Below, in pieces: positions 18,091-52,527 of a DNA stretch of 64,000 bases (within the stretch, counting starts at the first letter, position 1; each line of letters begins with the position of its first letter). The notes beneath the pieces were generated by a model. It searched no databases. It saw only the letters and a program-made list of their open reading frames with translations, and had not been told where the DNA came from. The stretch comes from Diadema antillarum. Lineage: Eukaryota. The position numbers and the translations under genes are program-made. The DNA lies in assembly GCF_040938485.1 (NCBI RefSeq), contig NW_027272710.1:1-64000 (forward strand), in the 5' to 3' direction.

Positions 18091-19843
18091 CTCTTTTGGA
18101 ATAGTCATAGCGTTGCCACATATTAAAACACACTGTGATTCACAGTGTGAAACACAGTGTGTTATCTCACACTATGGTTACCTGCGAAATTGGACGTAGG
18201 GTAATGCTGTGTTATTATCACACTGTGGAAAATCTCAGTATTTCATACTGAGGCATATAGTATGTCATAGTGAGGCATCCCATACTGTGTTATCTTCCAC
18301 AGTGTCTCATACTGTGTTATCTACCACAGTCTTTCACTCTGTGTTAGCAAACACAGTCAAAAAAAAATCTAAGACAATCAATAGCCATAATAAAATGTAT
18401 CATAATTTACCCAACAGGCGAGTGATGAATTTCAGGACAACATGTTCCCTCCTATATAACCTGTCCTTCTCGTAATAGTAACCTCAAGCAACTTATACGG
18501 CCTATTACCATTGTAGTCCTAAATAAATCTATAACAGTCATCCCATTCCTACTTAGACATCGGGTGTATCAATATATCATATGCCATCTATTCGTAATGC
18601 ATTAAGGCATGGTTCTCAAATAGACAATACTTTACTATCAAGAAATGAAGTTACACTTTCATAACAAAATTTATAACATTTGGAATATTATAACATTATT
18701 AGACAATCTTTGATAAAGTTCAAAGTAAAGACTTATCATAAATACCCTGAAATTAGAAGTATTTATTAGGAATTTTCTAACATTTTGATTGCATTTAATG
18801 AATATTTATGAGCTTTATGACATTTTGTGCCATAGTGTTACCACAGGAGCACCACAGGATACTATAGGAACCACAGAAATACCACACGCGAAGTGTCACA
18901 TACTGTACCTCATCACTCCCACTTAATAGGTTAAATACTGTTTAAATTCATTGTTATAATCATGCTGCAACATATGTGACACGTTCAGTGGTTAGTTTGT
19001 GGTAAACTGTAGTTCATGATGAGTCACTGTGTGACTTTTGGGTGACAAACCACATAATCTAGAATTTCGCACTGTGTCAATTCGGTGGACATAATATTCC
19101 CACATACTGCAATGTGTCACACAATTCGGTTGTGTGTGTGTGTGTGTTGCAAGCGCTGTAGCAACTGTGATTACTATGTGACTTTCGGTGAAGAACATCA
19201 TACACTAGAATTCCACACTGTGGCAACTCTGTTGGCACACAAATTTTACATACAGTATGTGACTCACTGTGGTTATTATATGGTAAGCTGTGGTAACTGT
19301 GATTTCTATCAGATTTAGCATGTGGTAAGTCACATAGTTTAAAAACACACTGTGCTCTTACGTGAACACATCTTTCCTACAGAATGAAATATGAAACACA
19401 CTGTGACTATCATGTGGTAGCTGTAGTAACTCTATACTACTATCTGGCTATATAGGAGATAAACCACATAGTATATCGTTTCACACTGTGACATCACTGT
19501 GGGGGCGTTATTCCCATAGAATGCAATATGTGACACACTGTGACTATCATGTGGTAACTGCATGTCACATATGATAAGTATGTGCTTAACCACGTAGTCT
19601 GAAAATTCATACTATGACAACTCTATGAACACACCATGCCCACATACTGCAGCATATGACACACTGTTACCATTATGTGGTAAGCTGTGGTAACTGTGTA
19701 TATCTATGTAAGTTATAAGTGGTGAACCACGTAGTTTTCAATTTGAGACTGTGGCAACACTGTGAACACAATGTATTCACACATTTTACACATCGTTAAC
19801 TATGTGAACACAGTGTGGTAGTACTGTGTTTGTTCCATAAGTT
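18091..19843. mobile_element. ~1.75-kb insertion with CACAGTGTG arrays at both ends
   Basis: Present here, at 31049-35800 (interrupted) and at 45688-47522. The flanks are directly joined near 60832. The possible short TIR (CTCTTTTGGAA / TTCCATAAGGG) is weak. Confidence 0.6.
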
Positions 19844-21349: not shown

Positions 21350-21594
21350 GAGGAGTTTGTTCGCAAAAACCGATAAGTCCATTTTTTTTAAGATTTTGAA
21401 TTACGGTCTATGTCATAAAGTACAAAATAATACATTTTATATGATGTATTAGTCACTACATATACAGGTACATTTTTGAAGTTATGGTCAAAAGAAACAT
21501 TCATTTTATAATTCTCTTTATTTTTCTTGACCTTTAATCGCAAATATCTCCATTTGGCAAATATGGACTTATCGGTTCTTGCGAACAAAAACTC
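21350..21594 (-). mobile_element. GAAGAG-TIR MITE, reverse orientation
   Basis: Reverse complement of 4036-4282 and paralogous to 49006-49249. Confidence 0.88.
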
Positions 21595-21792: not shown

Positions 21793-24426
21793 GGTTTATT
21801 GCCACTTGGTCTATTCCCACTTGGTCTAATCACCAGTTGGGCTAACACCATTCGGGCTAAGCCCATTTGGTCCACTTCTCACTTGGTCTGCTTGCCACAT
21901 GGTCTAATAACCAGTTGGTCCACTGACCACCAGGGCTAATTGTCACTTTGTCTAATTCCCATTTCGTCTAATTGCCACTTGGTTTAATGTATTTTTTTGC
22001 CACTAGGTCCAATTGCACTTGGTCTAATATCAGTTCGTCTAATGTTCAGTTGGTCTAACACCATTTGGTCTCTTGCCAGTTGGTAATTTCCCAGTTGGTC
22101 TAATAACCAGTTGGTCTAATATCCACTTGGGCTAATTCTCACTTGGTTTATTTTACACTTAGTCTATTTTCATTTAGTCTAATAGCCACTTGGTCTAATT
22201 GCCAGTTCGTCTAATCATCATTTGGTCTAATTCCCACTTTGGCTAATGACCAGTTGGTCTAATGACCAGTTGGGCTACCACAGACTCTAGGCTACTGAGT
22301 CTAGGTGTCGATTAATATGGTAATTAAGTTGGCTCAAACACAGATTTAAATTTTAAGGGCAATATTGCGTAAGAAGGTGGAATGGTTAATCATCTTTTTT
22401 CGTGAAAGGGTCCGGGTGAAAGCCCACAATTTAAATGCGTGTATTAATTGGCCTTGAATTACTTACTTTTATTCATTCATTTTTTTTTTTTAATGTTTAG
22501 TAGTAGCCCTGCAGCAAATCTTTACTGAGGAGTGAGGGGAGGGGGATGATCAGCGATAGTCACCATCACCACAATAACAAGCGCATAACTGAACCGGCGG
22601 AGCCTTGGGGGGGGGGGGGGGGGGAGAAAAACTTGGTGCCGCCCGCCCCCCCCCCCCCCCACACACACACTCACACTTTACAGGGATCGAATGTCCCACT
22701 CTTTTGCATGAAATGTAAAGTGGGAGGAAAGTGGCAGCAAAAATATGAAATATGAAATATGTTTTGTTTTGTTTTTTTTTTTTTTTTTGCTTGTCAGATG
22801 ACTTTCGGTGGAAAATCAGACCTTAAAAGTATGAAGACCTTTTTTTGTTTTTGAAATGTCTGTGCGAGGGAGCGGAGCAACCGAGCGGGGGTAGATTTTG
22901 GGAGAGGGGTATCCCCCCACACGAGGAAGATTTTGCATTTCCAGACCTGAAATTCAGCGATCTGGTGCACACTATTGGTGAAATTTTGGATTTTTTTCCT
23001 GAAAAAAAATAAGTAAGAAAATGAAATATTAATATATCATTGAATGACTTAATTTATCATTGAATGACTAAATCGTGGTATTTCAGCTCTTGCTCCGCCT
23101 GTGTGACATTACTGTGAAGGCCTACTAATCAGTGGGGCCTATCACCGGCGTAGCAAGGATTTGATCTTAGGGGGAGCGGTTATATGCGAGGGAGCGAAGC
23201 AAGCGATGGGGGGGGGGGAGGTGTGGGAGGGGGATTCCCCCTCCCAAGGTGAGAACTTTTTGCATTTTGATGTTGTAAATGGTGCAATTTGATGTATTTT
23301 TTGCGTGTTTTATCGACTTCAAACAATCCCCCATGTTTAAGGTAGCAGCACATTTTGATGTAGGTTATTAGCGAACATTTTGCCTATAAAATTGTGTCAT
23401 CTGAATAAATGTTTTGTATTAATTATGTTACACTGAACATCATAAACGCGACCGAGCCCGAGCGAGCGGAGGGAGCGAGAGGTGGGGGTTGGAGGGAGAT
23501 GTCCCCCCTCCCACGGTGAGAATTTTTTGCATTTTGATGATGAACATGGTGCAATTTGATGCATGTTTTTGCGCGTATTGTCGACTTGAAACGGTCCCAC
23601 TTGTTTGAGGTAGCAATATAACTGACAATTCCGGTTTCCTTTTTATTGGGACGCACTGTATATTTACGCCTGTGGTTCCGTCGAAAACAATTTATAAAGC
23701 GCAATTATTTGGATGCTCTGAAATACAAGTTTTATAGACAGATTTTTTTTTAAAATCCCTGGTGTGGGAGGGCTCCCGCACCCTCCCCCCGCTCAAGTCT
23801 GCAATGATCAGTCTTGTATTAGGTTTCTGTATCACAAGATGGCTGTATTAAAGATAAAAACACACGCATGTGTGTATATCATAGAGTTGTATGATATATA
23901 ACGGTTGTTAACACTTCCTTTTTTAAATCCATGGTTCATGTTTCTTATTTTAGACCAAGTGGCATTAGACTAAGTGAGAATTAGACGAAATGGAAATTAG
24001 ACCAAGTGAAGATTTGCCCAAGTGTTAATTAGACTAAGTGGTAATTAGACCAAATGACAATTAGACGAAATGGAAATTGGACTAAGTGATATGTAGACCA
24101 AGTGGTAATAGCCGAAATGGGTGTAGCCCAAATGAATATTAGACTAAATGGCATGTAGACGAAGTGAATATTACACCATGTGGAAATTAGACGAAGTGGA
24201 AATTAGACGTAGTGGCAATTAGCCGGAGTGGAAATTAGACCAAGTGGTGTTAGACTAACTGAGAATTAGACTAAGTGGTATTAGCCGAACTGGATATTAG
24301 ACCAAGTGGAAATTAGACGAAATGGTAAATAGACGAAGTGGTTGTAGCCGAATAGGGTTTATCCCGAATGGTGTTAGCCCACCTGGTTATGAGACCAAGT
24401 GGTAATAGCCCAAATGATAATTTACC
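21793..24426. mobile_element. Foldback/MULE-like element with inverted minisatellite arms, copy 1
   Basis: Left arm (~21793-22280) is made of ~17-bp CCACTTGGTCTAA units and the right arm (~23950-24426) of the reverse-complement units. GG...CC termini, TSD tatctaaac / aatctaaac (8 of 9 match). Empty sites near 10235 and 37540. Confidence 0.8.
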
Positions 24427-26252: not shown

Positions 26253-27317
26253 TTATGCTCGCCTCATGCGCATACAGGCACATGACACAGGGACTTGAAG
26301 GGTCCTCTGCTCGTACCGGAAGTGGCCATCCACACACTGGGTCTTCTGAAGGACTTTCATGTTGTACATCACAGGTTGACATCGAAGGTTTGGATCCACT
26401 TGGTGTGTGTAAGGATCCAGACATGCAGAACACTGGCACTGAGCCATAGTGATCACCATCGGGATACGGTCGGCATCGAAGCATTCCACGTAGGTCCATG
26501 GACACGAGCCGTCCTGGTTCACGATCTCCGGACTTCCAGCGTTTGGTTTCGCTCCTACGGGGCAGTTCTGCGGGCTGGAGACGCCATCAAATGGACAGCT
26601 CGACGTGTGGGCCAAGCCCATATCACTGGTCGACAGGTTGAAACTTTGTACGGCGAATGCTGCCGCTTTGGGATAGAAAAGATTAGAGTTCAGTTCTCGT
26701 CGATGGGAATCAGCTGCGTCTATTGGCAGACATGCCTGAGAGGTGCTTGGGACTGGTGACGATGTGACGGTCTGGATGATAGCTGCTGCTGCTGCCATCG
26801 ACGTAAAAAGAAGTAGGGTCTGATGAGGCAAAATGATAAGAAATAGGTAAATGCTACGTCCATACGGCCATATGGATAAAATTTTGTCAAAATAATTGCT
26901 AATTTCAATGCAGAAAACATGATAAGTGGAAAACAGCTTCAATACTATTCGCATTTCAACTAGTAACGGAGTTTCAATGCAAATAGGTAATCATTTAAAT
27001 GGAATACTTAATTACGATAAATCTTGTCCTTTTGTTTCTTGATATAGACAAATTACACACGACTTTTGCAGAAATACATTAACCTGCATTAGTTGACAAA
27101 TGCAAAATAAATTGAATCTAGTACATAGGGTACACCGCGACAAAATTTTCGAGTGTTTGCTAGATGAAAGACGAGCGCAGGCAGTCAACTGAAATACCAT
27201 GCGGAATTGTAATTGCAACGATACCAACTGTCAATGTCAGGTGTGATGGTAAGATAGTCATAATGGCACGACTCTTCTTGAATGTCAAACTAAAGTGGTG
27301 GTAGGACTCACATTCAT
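26253..27317 (-). CDS. IL17: Interleukin-17 family cytokine, copy 2 (type B): join(27317..27312,26819..26253), 190 aa
   Basis: Same cystine-knot pattern and splice sites as copy 1, with a five-Ala run in the signal peptide. Confidence 0.9.
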
Positions 27318-29570: not shown

Positions 29571-31624
29571 AAACATAAATACAGAAGTTTGAAAGTTATG
29601 TGTAACATCAATTTAATGGTATTCACTTCCTCTTAAACAAAACCTGATTCAAAACTGTTTGATACAATGAAACAACACTTGCAATAGACGTAAAGCTTTA
29701 CCAACGAAAATGGCATTTCTTTTAATAACATTAGTATTTCTTCTCTCTACCCCTGTCACTTTCGCGCTTGATATTTTACCAGTTATTTTTTTACCTGACA
29801 CCAAGTTGGATTGCATGAATACGTGTGCGTTGATGACCTGTACTTTCACATGCATTCCGCACTATTATAAATTACGGATGTTGTGGTAGATTTCCTCTTC
29901 GTTTGTTGTATTGTTAAGTATTCTTTGAGTAGACGGAAATGGAACTTCCCTTCTGCGAAATCAAAATTCTGCGGGATTCTCCGAAGTGTCTGATGTCATT
30001 GTTACACTGCTGACGTATATTATAGTTGTCCGAAGTCTGAAGTTGTAAGTATATCCATTTCTATTTTGTTAGTAACCCATGTGCTTGCCCTCTGTTTTTT
30101 TTTTTTTTTTTGATGCAGTTACTACTCCGTATCTGTTTAAAATTTATCGGTAACGTAGTCTAGAAGGCATACAAAGCCGTATGAAAGTCACTCCGTCATT
30201 TGAATTCGTTGGCGTTTTTTTCACCATTCACTTAGCTTTAATTTATTCGATGAGACGATATTAGATCATAACGATGAGCAGGTTTCCCAATTTTTGCGGT
30301 GCTGTATTTGGGGCTTCCCTTGTATTCACATCTTTAAAAGTTATATCACTATCACAACACAACAGCATGTAGACTCTGTTTAGATGATTAATGGCCAGGA
30401 TCACTGCTGATCAGCAAAGCGAATTGACCTGACTGAAGTGAAGAGTCGAAGTTTTTTACAAATATTATATTCGACAGGTGGATGATCACGACGGGGAAAT
30501 AGTTGTTTGTAAAGAAGGATATCACTTCTGAACATAGATGGGACAATAGCTCATTTGGATCATTAACTCCAAAAATAACTATTGATTACATTTTTGGATC
30601 AGTTTACAATATTTTGATCTTGCCACAGGAGGAGAAAATGACAGTCCAGTGAACTTGGCGGAAATACGAAAATCCGGCGGACCTTGTTCTATCGCACCTC
30701 CGTGTGAATGATGGCATTCTGCAATACCAGGGCGAGGGAAGGTTCAGATTCGAGATCTCTCTCGCCTATGCATTTTGTACACCGTTTGCAACAAAATGTC
30801 AAGGTCTCACACCCAGAAGACATCTAGATTGTAAATGTACAATGCACTATACATAAAATTTATTAATCAAACAATACACATACAGCGTCTCCGTTCAACC
30901 TCAGCAATTCAGGTGTTGTCATTCTCCAATGATTCATCCAACATATCGCTTTTCCTTAAGTCACTCCTTATGAAGCTTTTCATGTGAAAAATCGTATTCA
31001 AAACCTTTTGTCAGCTGTTTGCTGTCTAATCATCCATACTGTATCTATCTCTTTTGGAATAGTCATAGCGTTGCAACATATTAAACACACATTGTGATTC
31101 ACAGTGTGAAACACAGTGTTTTATCTCACACTATGGTTTCCTGTGAAATGGGGCGTAGGGTAATACTGTGTTATTGTCACACTGTGGAAAATCACAGGGT
31201 GAATACTGTGGTAGGTAACACAGTATGTCAAAGTGAGGCATCCCATACGGTGTTATCTTCCACAGTCTCTCATACTGTGGTATCTACCACAGTCTTTCAC
31301 TCGGTGTTATCGAACATAGTCGGGAAAAAAATCTGGGACAATCAATAGCCATAATGAAATGTATCATAATTTACCTAATAGGCGAGTATGAATTTCGGTA
31401 CAAACATTTCCCTACCTTTATAATCTGTCCTTCTCCTAATGTATAACATCAAACAACTCATACGGCCTTCTACCATTGTAGTCCTAAATAGATCTAGAAT
31501 AGTCTTCCTATTCTTAGTCATCGGGAGTATCAGTATATGTGATAAAAAAACCTAAAATGGCAATAGATCTAAAAACGCTTTCTCCTGGCGAGGAAAGCGC
31601 ATGATTTAGAAACAAGACACCAAA

Positions 31625-31756
31625 CAGGTTAGTAATCACATTCTTCATCAGCGACCAGGATTCGATGTGATGTAAGATTAAAATCCGTTTCTGAAGCAGA
31701 CATACACACAAGGATATATGTCTGCTCCTGGTCGGACGGATTTCAAAACTAACCTG
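31625..31756 (-). ncRNA. Hammerhead-ribozyme-like motif with atypical arrangement
   Basis: GUC is directly followed by CGACCAGGA, whose complement UCCUGGUCG is directly followed by CUGAUGA. Two candidate GAAA strands exist (31744-31741 and 31691-31688), with a flanking 9-bp helix CAGGUUAGU/ACUAACCUG. Confidence 0.5.
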
Positions 31757-31790
31757 CCGGTGATGGAATGCGTCTAGTCTGGTAGTTGCC

Positions 31791-33637
31791 GTCCTCAGAG
31801 GGCTAAACTTCCCAGAGCTGCTAATGCATCCTCACAAGACGCCACAAGTTTCACAAGGCCATTCACAATGAGTGAACTGGAATCTGCAATGAAGTCTATG
31901 AAAAACAACAAGGCTGCAGGTCTTGATGATGTCCTAGTGGAACAGATCAAACACTTCGGGCCAGGTGCACGCAGATGGCTTCTTGATATGGTCAACGAAT
32001 GTGTTAAGTCCAACAAGATCCCAAAGATGTGGAGGAAAGCAAAAGTCATTGCTCTACTGAAACCTGGTAAAGACCCTGCCATCCCTAAGAGCTATAGGCC
32101 GATATCCCTACTCTGCCACATGTACAAGCTGTTTGAACGCCTCCATTAACTCCTGAACCGCATAGCATTGTTCGTTGATGATCACCTTATTCCGGAGCAG
32201 GCGGGTTTCAGACCGGGAAAATCATGTACAGGACAACTACTGAACCTCACGCAGTACATCGAGGATGGTTTTGAGAACAGAAAAATCACTGGTGCTGCCT
32301 TTGTCGATCTTTCTGCAGCATACGACACAGTCAATCACCGTATCCTTGCCAAGAAACTGTATGAGATGACCTCAGATGTTAGACTCACAAAGTTGATCTG
32401 CAACATGCTATCAAACCGCAGATTCTTCGTAGACCTCGGTGGTAGAAAGAGTAGATGGAGGACACAGAAGAACGGACTTCCTTAAGGGAGTGTGCTTGCC
32501 CCTTTGTTGTTTAACATCTACACAAACGATCAACCTACTCAACCAGACACTAGACGCTTCCTCTATGCTGATGACCTTTGCATTGCATCTCAAAAGGACA
32601 CCTTCGAAGAAGTAGAGGACTCCCTCTCCAGTGCACTGGACTTACTCATTCCCTACTATGCCAACAACCATCTAAGAGCTAACCCAGACAAAACACAAAT
32701 CAGTGTGTTTCATCTTAAGAATAGGGAAGCCAGCCGTCAACTACGGATTAGTTGGTATGGGAAACGCCTGCAACATGTATCCAAGCCAGTCTACCTGGGG
32801 GTGACACTTGACAGGTCCCTCACTTTCAAGGATCACATCATTAAGAACAAGGCAAAGGTGGCATCAAGGAAAAGTATCCTCCGAAAGCTCACTTATACGA
32901 AGTGGGGTGCTGATGCGAAGACGGTACGTACAACAGCACTGGCTTTATGCTACCCTACAGCTGAGTATGCGTCACCTGTCTGGAGTAGATCAGCTCATGC
33001 CACTAAGATTGACACTGTTCTAAACTCTTCATGTCGTGCTATTACTGGTTGCCTAAAGCCCACAAAGGTTGAAGACCTCTACCTACTGAGTGGGATTGCT
33101 CCTCCAAGCATCCGTAGGACCGTTGCATCCCAGAAGGAAAAGCTGAAGCAAGAAAATGACCCTCGCCACCCTCTCTTCAATCATGATCATTCAAGAAAGA
33201 GGCTAAAATCCAGGCGCAGCTTCATGCATTCTGTAAAGGCCCTGAACAAAAGCCCTGACAAGCAGCGTGTATCCATGTGGATTGAACGTCTTACCCATAC
33301 ACCGCATACAGTGTCTACTACCGGCCCTAAGGAAACTACACCATCAGGTGCCAGTGAGGCATGGCCTTTCTGGTCCTGCTGCAATCGCCTAAGAAGTGCT
33401 GTCGGCCGCTGCAAATCTAACCTAGCAAAGTGGGGGTATAGTGAGAATGATGACACCACCTGCCTGTGTGGAGAGGAGCAGACTATGCAACATCTCCTGG
33501 TCTGTCCACTTCTACCAGAGCCTTGCACACAGGAGGATCTGGCAGCTCTAACGCCCTGTGCCAGGCAGTGCATCCAACATTGGACTGGACGAATCTAACG
33601 TTCCTTTCTGCGTAGTGACTCGAGAAGAAGAAGAAGA
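31791..33637 (+). mobile_element. 5'-truncated non-LTR retrotransposon (RT plus C-terminal CxC..H..C motif; Ingi/Vingi-like is tentative)
   Basis: ORFs 31868-32149, 32168-32485 and 32492-33598 share one frame broken by two TAA stops. Motifs QAGFRPG, FVDLSAAYDTV, GLP*GSVLAPLLFNIY, YADD, YLGVTLD. Ends in a (GAA)n tail with possible TSD ggtagttgcc / ggttggtgcc. Confidence 0.92.
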
Positions 33638-33962
33638 GGTTGGTGCCACAGTGCATGGTAACCGCGCAGTGTGTCTGTGCGCGTTAGGCGTAGCAACGAC
33701 GCATCCATGGACTGGTTCCCTCCATGAAGAGCCAAAGATGAAAGGATGAATTCAGTGTTAAAAAAAAAAACATGACAAAATGAATCCCTGATAGCTTTTC
33801 AATGGACTTACATTGCCAATGTCATTGCTCCGATTTACTATCACGAAGATAAACGGTTCAGAGACCCACCTCATCTCGTCTTTCACTGACGCAACCTCAC
33901 ACCTCCGGCCCCAAAGAGACATCCCAGCCAGTAGTTGTGCCTTGTCAGTGATGGAATACTGT

Positions 33963-34067
33963 ATCAGACTTTCCTGATAGTCAACGGTCTTTCCCGTAGT
34001 CAATCAGACTTTTCCTGATAGTCAATCAGACTTTACCTGATAGTCAACCAGCCTTTCCTGGTAGTCA
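33963..34067. repeat. Five ~21-bp tandem units (ATCAGACTTTCCTGATAGTCA)
   Basis: Direct reading. Confidence 0.85.
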
Positions 34068-34160
34068 CTGATCAAAAACGAACAGAAGTGAATGTGATAA
34101 AAAACCTAAAATGGCAATAGATCTAAAAACGCTTTATCCTGGCGAGGAAAGCGCATGATT

Positions 34161-34337
34161 NNNNNNNNNNNNNNNNNNNNNNNNNNNNNNNNNNNNNNNN
34201 NNNNNNNNNNNNNNNNNNNNNNNNNNNNNNNNNNNNNNNNNNNNNNNNNNNNNNNNNNNNNNNNNNNNNNNNNNNNNNNNNNNNNNNNNNNNNNNNNNNN
34301 NNNNNNNNNNNNNNNNNNNNNNNNNNNNNNNNNNNNN
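34161..34337. other. Assembly gap (177 N)
   Basis: Run of N. Confidence 1.
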
Positions 34338-34545
34338 AGATTTTGAAGTACGGTCTCTGTCATAAAGTACAAAATAATACCTTTTTAAATGATATATTGT
34401 TCATACATATAAAGATATATTTTTGAAGTTATGGTCAAAAGAAGCAAAATTTTTCTTATTATTCTCTTTGTTTTTCTTGATCTTTAATCACAAATATCTC
34501 CACTTGGCAAATATGGACTTATCGGTTTTTGCGAACAAACTCTTC
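34338..34545 (-). mobile_element. GAAGAG-TIR MITE truncated by the gap
   Basis: Ends CTTATCGGTTTTTGCGAACAAACTCTTC, and the internal sequence is the reverse complement of 4036-4282. Confidence 0.85.
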
Positions 34546-36979
34546 AATATGATAATATACATGTATAGACCATCTATTCGTAATGCATTAAGGTATGGTT
34601 ACTAACTTGACAATACTTTACCATCAACATATGAAATTACATTTTCATAACAAAATCTATGACATTGGGAATATTATGATATTATTAGACAATGTATGAT
34701 AAAGTTCAAAGTAAATCGCATCATAAATACTCTGAAATTAAAAGTCTTTTATGTATTTTCTTAAATTTTGATTGCTTTTAATGAGTATTCATAACCTGTG
34801 TAAAGATTTGTGATACAGTGTTACCACAAGAGTACCACAGGAATACCATAGGAATACCACAGAAATACCACATGAAGTATCACATACTGTACCTCAGCAC
34901 TCCAACTAAATGGGTAATACTGCAGGAGCATATGTCAGGTTAAATACTGTTTAAATCAATTGTTATGATTCACAGCATTACTTATTTATCAATTACATTT
35001 TGGAATATGTGTGTAGTATGTTAGTTTGTTAGTTTATTCCAGTAGGACCTACTGCTGTGTGTTACTCATGTGAGGTACTGCTGTGTGGCATATTGTATTG
35101 TCTTGTGATAGTCCTGCGATACTGTGATTAGTTTGTGACTTTTGGGGAAGAACCACATAGACTAGAATTCCACACTGTGGCAACTCTGTGGGCACACAAA
35201 ATTTCACAAATTACAGTATGTGACACACGTTGGCCAATGGTAAGCTGTGGTAACTGTGATTTCTTTCAGATTTAGCATGTGGTAAGTCACATAGTTTTAA
35301 ATACACAATATTTGTGTATAAGTGAACACATCTTTCCCACAGACTATGTAACACACTGTGGCTATTGTGTGATAGCTGTGGTAACTGTATACCTCTATGT
35401 GGCTAGTAGGAGATAAACCACATAGTTTATCGTTTCACACTGTGACATCTCTGTGGAGGCACTATTCCCATAGACTGCAATATGTGACACACTGTGACTA
35501 TTATGAGTTAACTGCATGTCACCATATGATAAGTATGTGGTTTACCACATAGTCGGAAAATTCAAACTATGACAACTCTTTGAACACACCATGCCCACAT
35601 ACTATACCATAGTACACACTGTGACCATTACGTGGTAAGCTGTGGTAACTGTATGACTACGTGAGTTGTATGTGGTGAACCACATAGTTGGTAATTTCAC
35701 ACTGTGTCAAAACTGTGAACACACTATATTCACACATTTTACACATAGTTAAATATGTGAATACATTGACAGTGGTAACACTGTGTTTGTTCCATAAGGG
35801 CATGGCTCATGTTCTCTTCGATATTTCAACTGCTCGTCGACAAGGTCCTCTAAATCTAGTTACCCATCACTGCCAGGTGTCCATAATTTGCACAGGCCTA
35901 TTTGATTAGCGAGGAACAAAAGTTATGAAACGTCTTCTCTCAAATATTATTGTTTCAGCTCAGCAGAAATCTACTTCTGGCGCCTCCGGTTAGGAGTCTT
36001 AGATATAATACCGCCCCCTCCCGAAAGAAGAGTATAAGGACATCAATGAAAACTAAGAAACGTACGTTGTAAGGTACAAAGTTGAGCAGTTGTGAAGAAA
36101 TCTTGAAAAAAAATCAGTAGAGCTAAAATCTTCCTGTGGCGCCTCCTGTTAGTAGTCTATTAAATTAATATTTGAATATAAGGGCAAGGTACACAGTTCA
36201 CTTGTAAGACGTAGCAGTTTCTTATTATTATGCCCCTGCATTAGAACGAAAACACCTTGACAGAAGAAATTACAGTACACACTGGACGTCAAGCTGTTAC
36301 GATCATTTTTGATAAATCCCCCAAGGGAGAAGATTCAAGTCAACATTATTTCATACTTGTGTGTTTAGAACTCCGAGTTACAAATCGCGAATATTTCAAA
36401 TCTTGGATCGAATGCATTCTTCACTTTAATTCTCATATTCGGGTAAATGGTATAGATAAACAATGATTATAATACCTGTAAATCTTGAAATGAATTCACA
36501 ACCCAAATTAAAAACTCCGTCCCTACGTAGGACCAACTTTTTTAAACTTTTGTCAAGTGATATCTAGAAATTGTTTTCAAATAATCATTTACCTCAAACC
36601 GCTCATTTTTTAAATGAAAACACGGTATTCTATTACGTCATTATATTGTTTCTTTCACGATTTCTTCTTAACGAGTAGAAATTTTCTTCCTTTTTTGTGA
36701 TGCGTGCTTGTTTCTGGCTCTGGCTGTGTATACGCACGTTACGTTTGTGTGTGTGTGTGTGTGTGTTACTTGCGTTACATGTGTATGTTGTTTGGGTGTG
36801 TGTGTGTTTGTGTTTGTGTTATTTCAAGTAGGCCTACATGATTACATCAAAATTATGTTGAATGATGTATGTATCTACTCGGTCTGAGAGATAAGACCGA
36901 GTTGACCGATGTTGACTCACTTCTCTTCTCACTGAGCACACACCCTAAATCTTACACATATTCACTGAAATGATATATC

Positions 36980-40731: not shown

Positions 40732-41599
40732 AGGAGATGCCGCTTTAATTACATTATGTACATAATACATCCAAAAATAGCCTTCTTAAAAATACACTTA
40801 CTGTTCCACTTAAATAGAATAACAAATTGGAATTTTCTTTCTAATGATCTAATCCTTTAATATCGTGTAACTGACCAAAGCACTGTTAAACAAAAGTACT
40901 CTTTGCAAGAATACTCAAGAAAACTTCGGAAGTCATTATTTGGTGACGCAGATCTCTGATGAAATGTTTTAGATAGAGATAAACCCTGAATTAAACAGAT
41001 TGTAACTCTAAAGGATCTGTAACTCGACAGAGTTTATGTTCCTGAAACAATATTCATGAGAGAAACTCAAACACACAGGTAAAGATACTGATGCAAACGG
41101 GAAATTAAGAGTCCCAGAAAATTTACCAGCGGGAACATTTTCTGTTTTGCAGTGGGAAAAAACCGAAGCCGTACGAACGGAAGCAACGCCAATTTGGCTT
41201 ATGCAAAGACGGATATCTTAGTGATAACTATATCAAGAAAACAAGGAAATATCAGAATCGGACTTTTTGAGGTGAAATGTATAGTGAATGATAAATAGCA
41301 ATTATAACATAAAGATGTCGACTAAAATATAAAGATGTTCTCCCCTAGAAAAGGAAATGTAAGGTAGCGTCTGTCCCTCCCCCTCCATCCGGTTTTGCCA
41401 CCCTTGCTACGCTTTACACACATTATATTTGAGACCTGAAAGGTGTTCGCAACTGCATTCAACACACTGCAACACATGGAAAGAACACAGTGTCCCACAA
41501 TGTACAACACTATGTGAAACACAGTGTGAAAACATTGTAAACACAGTGTGAAATCTCTTCACACTGATAGATTCGAGCATATCAACAGTATGAACACAT

Positions 41600-41845
41600 G
41601 AAGAGTTTGTTTGCAAAAACCGATAAGTCAATATTTGCCAAATGGAGGTATTTGCAATTAAAGGTCAAGAAAAATGAGGAGAATAATACGAAATGTTTTG
41701 CTTCTTTTGACCATAACTTCAAAAATATACCTTTATATGTAGTGACCAATGTATCATTTAAAAGGTATTATTTTTACTTTATGACAGAGACCGTACTTCA
41801 AAATCTTCAAAAATGGACTTATCGGTTCTTGCGAACAAACTCTTC
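41600..41845 (+). mobile_element. GAAGAG-TIR MITE with a clean target duplication
   Basis: gaacACAT-[GAAGAG...CTCTTC]-ACATtgtgaat versus the empty paralog gaacACATtgtgaat near 14350. Confidence 0.9.
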
Positions 41846-49005: not shown

Positions 49006-49249
49006 GAGGAGTTTGTTCGCAAAAACCGATAAGTCCTTTTTTTAAGATTTTGAATTACGGTCTATGTCATAAAGTACAAAATAATACATTTTATATGATG
49101 TATTAGTCACTACATATACAGGTACATTTTTGAAGTTATGGTCAAAAGAAACATTCTTTTTATAATTCTCTTTATTTTTCTTGACCTTTAATCGCAAATA
49201 TCTCCATTTGGCAAATATGGACTTATTCGTTTTTGCGAACAAACTCTTC
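49006..49249 (-). mobile_element. GAAGAG-TIR MITE (paralog of 21350-21594)
   Basis: Same flanks and orientation as 21350-21594. Confidence 0.88.
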
Positions 49250-49253
49250 ATAC

Positions 49254-49294
<41 letters not shown>

Positions 49295-50763: not shown

Positions 50764-52527
50764 CACACTTTACAGGGATCGAATGTCCCACTCTTTTGCA
50801 TGAAATGTAAAGTGGGAGGAAAGTGGCAGCAAAAATATGAAATATGTTTTGTTTTGTTTTGTTTTGTTTTTTTGCTTGTCAGATGACTTTCGGTGGAAAA
50901 TCAGACCTTAAAAGTATGAAGACCTTCTTTTGTTTTTGAAATATCTGTGCGAGGGAGCGGAGCAACCGAGCGGGGGTAGATTTTGGGAGAGGGGTATCCC
51001 CCCACACGAGGAAGATTTTGCATTTCCAGACCTGAAATTCAGCGATCTGGTGCACACTATTGGTGAACTTTTGGATTCTTTTCCTGAAAAAAAAATAAGT
51101 AAGAAAATGAAATATTAATATATCATTGAATGACTTAATTTATCATTGAATGACTAAATCGTGGTATTTCAGCTCTTGCTCCGCCTGTGTGACATTACTG
51201 TGAAGGCCTACTAATCAGTGGGGCCTATCACCGGCGTAGCAAGGATTTGATCTTAGGGGGAGCGGTTAGATGCGAGGGAGCGAAGCAAGCGATGGGGGGG
51301 GGGGGGGGGAGGTGTGGGAGGGGAATTCCCCCTCCCAAGGTGAGAACTTTTTGCATTTTGATGTTGTAAATGGTGCAATTTGATGTATTTTTTGCGTGTT
51401 TTATCGACTTTAAACAATCCCACATGTTTAAGGTAGCAGCACATTTTGATGTAGGTTATTAGCGAACATTTTGCCTATAAAATTGTGTCATTTGAATAAA
51501 TGTTTTGTATTAATTATATTACACTGAACATCATAAACGCGACCGAGCCCGAGCGAGCGGAGGGAACGAGAGGTGGGGGTTGGAGGGAGATGTCCCCCCT
51601 CCCACGGTGAGAATTTTTTGCATTTTGATGATGAACATGGTGCAATTTGATGCATGTTTTTGCGCGTATTGTCGACTTGAAACGGTCCCACTTGTTTGAG
51701 GTAGCAATATAACTGACAATTCCGGTTTCCTTTTTATTGGGACGCACTGTATATCTACGCCTGTGGTTCCGTCGAAAACAATTTAGAAAGCGCAATTATT
51801 TGGATGCTCTGAAATACAAGTTTTATAGACAGATTTTTTTTTTAAATCCCTGGTGTGGGAGGGCTCCCGCACCCTCCCCCCGCTCAAGTCTGCAATGATC
51901 AGTCTTGTATTAGGTTGCTGTATCACAAGATGGCTGTATTAAAGATAAAAACACACGCATGTGTGTATATCATAGAGTTGTATGATATACATTTGTATAA
52001 CGGTTGTTAACACTTCCTTTTTTAAATCCATGGTTCATATGTTTCTTATTTTAGACCAAGTGGCATTAGACTAAGTGAGAATTAGACGAAATGGAAATTA
52101 GACCAAGAGAAGATTTGCCCAAGTGTTAATTAGACTAAGTGGTAATTAGACCAAATGACAATTAGACGAAATGGAAATTAGACTAAGTGATATGTAGACC
52201 AAGTGGTAATAGCCGAAATGGGTGTAGCCCAAATGAATATTAGACTAAATGGCATGTAGACGAAGTGAATATTACACCATGTGGAAATTAGACGTAGTGG
52301 AAATTAGACGTAGTGGCAATTAGCCGGAGTGGAAATTAGACCAAGTGGTGTTAGACTAACTGAGAATTAGACTAAGTGGTATTAGCCGAACTGGATATTA
52401 GACCAAGTGGAAATTAGACGAAATGGTAAATAGACGAAGTGGTTGTAGCCGAATTGGGTTTAGCCCGAATGGTGTTAGCCCACCTGGTTATGAGACCAAG
52501 TGGTAATAGCCCAAATGATAATTTACC
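49496..52527. mobile_element. Foldback/MULE-like element, copy 2
   Basis: Near-identical to 21793-24426 with the same TSD, plus a nested insertion. Confidence 0.8.
49866..50248 (+). mobile_element. Retroelement 3' fragment nested in the foldback arm
   Basis: Ends AATAAA..(CAAA)n, flanked by an ACTTAG duplication, and absent from copy 1. Confidence 0.6.

Follow-up and report, generated by a model that had tools for sequence, protein, structure and literature searches.

Hammerhead topologies in the closest described systems

The hammerhead ribozyme can be divided into three blocks: S (the cleavage site), G (GAAA) and C (CUGAnGA). Types I, II and III are the three circular orders of these blocks. 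A non-circular order, type SGC (the HRIMA-1 motif and variants), was described and validated in 2023 by Eckert, Friedrich, Weinberg and Weinberg (NAR 2023, PMC10085705) in 583 sequences. These 80-nt RNAs were found almost only in metatranscriptomes, and none in the genome of a known organism. Their cleavage needs four helices: stems I, II and III, plus a helix that binds the other sides of stems I and II and is required for the cleavage of SGC-3. Stems I and II are of 5-6 bp (5/5 in SGC-1, 6/5 in SGC-3), the linker between the stem I and stem II strands is typically 3 nt, although the authors accept long insertions that fold into a hairpin, and G10.1-C11.1 lies next to G12. The authors left open how such permutations evolve. 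Most type II hammerheads, which are mainly bacterial and archaeal, have a pseudoknot between loop I and the bases just 3′ of stem II (Perreault et al. 2011, PMC3088659). The minimal type I hammerheads of Penelope-like elements (PLEs) and animal retrozymes have a GAAA-NNNN-GUC junction with a one-pair, near-palindromic stem III segment, act as dimers, and sit in PLE pseudo-LTRs or tandem arrays of invertebrate retroelements (Cervera and de la Peña 2014, PMC4209133; 2020, PMC7229834). Self-cleaving motifs are also multiplied as part of non-LTR retroelements, such as the Schistosoma Sm-alpha hammerhead and the HDV-like ribozymes at LINE 5′ ends; these lie on the sense strand of the element and process its transcript.

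A 64,000-nt stretch of DNA from the sea urchin Diadema antillarum (the window) was analysed here. A 132-base segment of it, 31625-31756, lies in a repeat present in roughly a thousand copies, and carries on its minus strand the invariant core letters of a hammerhead in the S-G-C order. As in type-SGC ribozymes, it shows stems I and III, one extra base after CUGAUGA, and a helix that joins the far sides of stems I and II and flanks the C block. It differs from the published examples in being DNA-encoded in an animal in about 10^3 copies, in having a 30-nt hairpin in place of the linker, a 9-bp stem I, an A between C11.1 and G12, an outer helix closing the domain, and an extra upstream GAAA. There is no sequence similarity outside the core. 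Self-cleavage is predicted from sequence alone.

A predicted hammerhead core on the minus strand

A first-pass annotation had described this segment as a hammerhead-like RNA carrying its own stem III partner inside loop I. Inspection of the minus strand confirmed that description letter for letter. In 5′ to 3′ order it holds the outer helix strand CAGGUUAGU, UUU, a first GAAA, UCC, GUC (31737-35), CGACCAGGA, a hairpin, UUCA, a second GAAA, CGGAUUUUAA, a 10-nt linker, UCCUGGUCG, CUGAUGA, AGAAUGUGAUU and ACUAACCUG. The features of the locus are as follows.

31541-31789 (-), repeat module M, one copy of a high-copy interspersed family, with the hammerhead-like domain and a 3′ region (in minus sense) with a hairpin and U-runs
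31748-31756 (-), outer helix P0, 5′ strand (CAGGUUAGU), nine Watson-Crick pairs with 31625-31633
31736-31746 (-), block S, stem III 5′ strand (UUGAAAUCCGU), including the first GAAA (31744-41) and U16.1 (31736), 11 pairs, one of them G.U, with 31678-31688
31735 (-), C17; the predicted cleavage is 3′ of it, between 31735 and 31734
31726-31734 (-), stem I 5′ strand (CGACCAGGA), nine Watson-Crick pairs with 31652-31660 (duplex energy -15.6 kcal/mol)
31696-31725 (-), hairpin H, nine Watson-Crick pairs, or 12 with two G.U, in the position of the usual ~3-nt linker of type-SGC ribozymes; in the family-majority sequence the two G.U pairs would be A.C in plus sense
31688-31695 (-), block G2: stem II 3′ strand UUC (31695-93), A11.1 (31692) and G12 A13 A14 A15.1 (31691-88)
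31678-31687 (-), stem III 3′ strand (CGGAUUUUAA)
31661-31667 (-), helix X 5′ strand (CAUCGaA here, CAUCGCA in the family majority)
31652-31660 (-), stem I 3′ strand (UCCUGGUCG)
31645-31651 (-), block C core box C3-A9 (CUGAUGA)
31641-31644 (-), A10.1 (31644) and stem II 5′ strand GAA (31643-41); A.A, then G-C, A-U and A-U with 31692-95
31634-31640 (-), helix X 3′ strand (UGuGAUu here, UGCGAUG in the majority)
31625-31633 (-), outer helix P0, 3′ strand (ACUAACCUG)
31790-34091 (+), 5′-truncated APE-type LINE, with reverse-transcriptase ORF pieces up to 33598 and a 3′ UTR with five copies of a 22-nt repeat (33963-34067)
34092-34160 (-), start of a second copy of M (A′), cut off by the N run 34161-34337

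All the invariant core letters are present in register: C3-A9 directly 3′ of the stem I strand, G12-A14, the A15.1-U16.1 pair (A31688 with U31736) and C17. Along the minus strand, H17 (31735), G12 (31691) and C3 (31651) follow each other in the S-G-C order. Stem I has 9 bp and stem III 11 bp, while stem II has only 3 bp after an A.A (A31644 opposite A31692) where hammerheads usually open stem II with a paired 10.1-11.1, most often G-C.

Both strands of the window were scanned for the three blocks in any order. Only three strong sites were returned. Two are ordinary type I hammerheads of a Penelope-like insertion at 8547-9981 (C3 at 9900 + and at 8628 -); they are minimal, identical and oppositely oriented (CUGACGA-GGCUUCGGCC-GAAAC-AGACU-GUC), and lie at the ends of that insertion. 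The third is the site described here. Forty shuffled windows gave only three hits, even at much looser thresholds (stem I ≥5, stem III ≥5, stem II ≥2). The minus strand folds at -53.7 kcal/mol (z = -5.3), and the plus strand at -42.8 kcal/mol (z = -3.2). Rfam searches at the gathering threshold and at E ≤ 10, on 64 kb, 800 bases and 151 bases, returned no hammerhead family for this site. This is weak evidence against it, since covariance models cannot hold the pseudoknotted order, and the genuine type I hammerheads of the same window reach only E = 0.85 (against RAGATH-1-hammerhead). Scans for tRNAs and for promoters and terminators found nothing.

The motif lies in a high-copy repeat module next to a LINE

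The window is a tandem array of ~14-kb units (spacings 13.0-15.1 kb) that are 84-100% identical in different segments. Each unit carries an interleukin-17 gene on the minus strand, for example 26253-26954 (Pfam IL17, E = 1e-17). Arrays with a 16-nt period recur at the same place in two units 28 kb apart (23922-24269 and 52023-52370), at 99% identity. The middle unit contains a ~3-kb insertion at about 31541-34554 that is absent from the paralogous units near 18577 and 46176. From left to right, the insertion comprises the non-coding module M, the plus-strand LINE, a second start of M, a run of 177 N, and an unrelated ~210-bp repeat (34338-34546). The latter has four more copies in the window, at 4037-4243 (-), 41599-41806 (-), 21391-21589 (+) and 49045-49272 (+), with 87-92% identity, and is probably a small mobile element. 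No tandem copies of M occur in the window.

Protein homology to LINEs starts at 31790, which rules out the motif being antisense LINE coding sequence. The reverse transcriptase (Pfam RVT_1; 32492-33598, +) has 50-70% identical relatives (proteins P0001-P0120) named from amphioxus, deep-sea eels, moths, a beetle and a psyllid, a very wide spread for one LINE lineage; relatives at 70% identity carry an Exo_endo_phos (APE endonuclease) domain upstream. Two related LINEs from other organisms (L001 and L002; 70% and 64% protein identity) share only coding sequence with this one, and carry no strong hammerhead-like site. The five 22-nt units of the LINE 3′ UTR (ATCAGACTTTCCTGATAGTCA) lie just before the second copy of M, and each can form a small hairpin. 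The second copy of M is 97% identical to 31537-31606, and both copies share a minority letter at the position equivalent to 31604. The right copy extends further left than the left copy, with letters also seen upstream of M in other copies, so M being a long target-site duplication was rejected. Downstream of the ribozyme-like domain in minus sense (31541-31606 and 34092-34160, -) lies a hairpin followed by U5, then U4 and U6-7 runs (GCGCUUUCC..GGAUAAAGCG-UUUUU); it looks like a terminator, but a simple terminator scan did not call it. One minus-strand frame (31517-31798, 94 codons) is free of stops across the whole of M, but a protein search with it found no relatives, so it is probably an accident.

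The contigs of four public runs were aligned to 31400-31999. Summed word depth was about 45,000 across M, against about 60-270 on the unique flank and about 340-730 on the LINE body (about 100-400 for the flank and LINE body in three runs). Since summed depth is not a copy number, this indicates only that M is roughly 100-200 times more abundant than its surroundings, on the order of 10^3 copies. Nearly all the other copies differ from this one at ten plus-strand positions: 31582, 31604, 31634, 31638, 31662, 31674, 31714, 31719, 31758 and 31759. In the part of the variants that was compared, no common one falls in CUGAUGA, either GAAA, GUC, stem I, stem III or the stem II letters. A contig from a third organism carries C17>U, C1.1>U and A1.3>G. 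All three changes are allowed by hammerhead rules in minus sense (H17 and two wobble pairs) and would be disruptive in plus sense, although that contig did not cover the partner strand. Searches for individual copies of M gave none: a 22-mer scan of JGI metagenomes returned one chance hit in a GC-rich contig, scans of viral and prokaryote genomes returned nothing, and an exact look-up of the LINE ORF found no record.

A fourth helix is perfect in the family-majority sequence

When the family-majority letters were applied to the 146-nt non-coding domain, the only region to which they were applied, a perfect helix of 7-8 bp appeared (helix X), in which CAUCGCA(U) at 31667-31661(60) pairs with (A)UGCGAUG at (41)31640-31634. 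Helix X lies immediately 5′ of the stem I strand and immediately 3′ of the stem II strand, which is the position of the type-SGC interaction helix. SGC-1 and SGC-3, rebuilt from the oligonucleotide table of the supplement to PMC10085705, show the same layout: stem III 3′ strand, X 5′ strand, stem I 3′ strand, CUGAUGA, one extra base, stem II 5′ strand, X 3′ strand. The minimum free energy is -62.7 kcal/mol for the majority sequence, against -53.7 kcal/mol for this copy. Three of the ten private differences of this copy (31662, 31638 and 31634) fall in helix X, and all three weaken it, turning three of seven pairs into C.U, G.U and A.G; five of seven pairs remain, one of them G.U. Hairpin H, which has no unpaired bases, replaces the short linker, so that stems I, H, II and X meet without a gap as a four-way junction, and P0 closes the whole domain.

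Two registers share one core

With the first GAAA, the sequence also reads as a type II (G-S-C) hammerhead. In this register stem II is AGA/UUU, it opens with a proper A10.1-U11.1 pair and is continued by P0, and helix X of the majority sequence falls exactly where most type II hammerheads have their pseudoknot (PMC3088659). Only UCCG lies between A15.1 (31741) and U16.1 (31736), however, so that stem III would be a single A-U pair over a loop that is not self-complementary, and neither the monomer nor a homodimer would work. The nested part of this fold has -37.5 kcal/mol, against -44.7 kcal/mol for that of the S-G-C fold. The latter keeps every helix of the former, including stem I and X, except the 3-bp AGA/UUU, and adds the 11-bp stem III, both strands of which would be transcribed before the C block. 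The type I dimeric reading typical of PLEs and retrozymes does not apply either: the one-pair junction is similar, but stem I is closed, UCCG is not palindromic, the partner strand is supplied in cis, and the neighbouring reverse transcriptase is LINE-type, with APE-endonuclease relatives.

Discussion

The most likely explanation is that the segment is one decayed copy of an abundant sea-urchin interspersed repeat whose minus strand encodes a hammerhead core in block order G1-S-G2-C, with the non-circular type-SGC arrangement as its stable fold. The probability that this is a genuine hammerhead-derived type-SGC motif is put at about 0.6. In this view, a minus-sense transcript would cut itself after C31735. 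The sequence, the helices, the abundance of the family and its majority letters were established directly by the analysis, whereas catalysis, the strand that is transcribed, and the idea that G1 is a leftover of a type II ancestor are inferences. The public runs used were all contigs, in which molecule ends cannot be seen. That the majority sequence cleaves is somewhat less likely than not, and cleavage by this copy, with its damaged helix X, is less likely still; it is probably weakly active or inactive.

The interpretation given in the first-pass annotation was only partly supported. A full hammerhead core is present, and the only sterically sensible stem III uses the second GAAA strand inside loop I. 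The copy is mutated, as had been suspected, but in helix X, which had not been seen, and not at 10.1/11.1, where the A.A is shared by the whole family. The statement that the topology was not known from the literature does not hold, since it is the type-SGC order. A two-state switch was not supported by the fold comparison above and was rejected, the S-G-C fold being taken as the operative one. The suggestion of an in-cis substitute for dimerisation remains a reasonable evolutionary reading, not a demonstrated mechanism.

Three features sit uneasily with an active ribozyme. Natural active hammerheads with a U.U at 10.1/11.1, the best tolerated mismatch there, and with stems II of one or two pairs, exist (PMC3088659), but the mismatch here is a family-wide A.A. 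Stem I (9 bp) and stem II (four layers) are also unequal, unlike those of SGC-1 and SGC-3; the three stacked non-canonical layers of the core lie on the stem II side, which may compensate for this, although this is an inference. M also appears to be the 3′ tail of a plus-strand LINE, which would make the ribozyme antisense to it.

The best surviving alternative, although unlikely, is that M is the structured 3′ tail of a LINE/SINE pair read on the plus strand, with helices serving recognition by the LINE reverse transcriptase. The hammerhead boxes on the opposite strand would then be an inert relic of a captured ribozyme element or a coincidence, with no present function. M abuts the 5′-truncated LINE, its start recurs at the 3′ end of that LINE, and the two copies share a minority letter. 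The plus strand of M is A-rich (AT skew +0.16), with five A runs of four or more and no such T run, like the LINE sense strand. The left end of M joins the flank at a microhomology, and the length of the N run (177) is that which would make the right copy end where the left one ends, if the run hides an equal length. The depth of M, about 100 times that of the LINE body, is as expected for LINE tails and their SINEs, and the layout fits a template switch to the 3′ end of a second RNA, which would have produced the left copy. In this view the ribozyme would be antisense to the retrotransposed RNA. On the other hand, the helices hold three G.U pairs in minus sense and none in plus sense, where they become A.C mismatches, the minus strand folds better, and the ribozyme boxes are on the minus strand. 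Further, other copies extend beyond both ends of this one, so the tail model is not proven, and related LINEs at 70% identity carry nothing similar. Given the six helices, the odds that the three junction strands read UH, GAA(A) and CUGANGA in register are estimated at about 1e-6.

A type II hammerhead in which the second GAAA strand acts as an attenuator sequestering the first is very unlikely, given its unworkable stem III and lower stability. Chance resemblance in a hairpin-rich repeat can be set aside, since, although stems I ≥9, III ≥11 and II ≥3 with all the boxes are roughly estimated at about 3e-11 per base of random sequence, which could yield about one case in tens of gigabases, this estimate ignores X, H and P0, all of which abut the core strands without gaps, and the whole family shares the arrangement.

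The type-SGC topology is thus already known, but it has not been reported in an animal or in the genome of a known organism, nor with a hairpin linker, an outer helix or a second GAAA block. A bolder reading, held only tentatively, is that an animal genome encodes, about a thousand times over, an active type-SGC hammerhead that keeps the old type II GAAA block beside the new one. The G1-S-G2-C order suggests that a second G block arose inside loop I of a type II ribozyme with a minimal stem III, the type II pseudoknot becoming the SGC interaction helix; this is an inference. The motif would then be a living intermediate showing how a non-circular RNA permutation arises. The antisense relation to the LINE, if real, would be a further puzzle. 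Non-circular permutations of a ribozyme have been described once, from environmental RNA of unknown hosts. If confirmed, this motif would place one in the DNA of a known animal, inside a mobile element, giving hundreds of copies for covariation analysis and an organism in which to study it. It would also show that current hammerhead searches, which assume types I-III, miss part of the ribozyme content of animal genomes.
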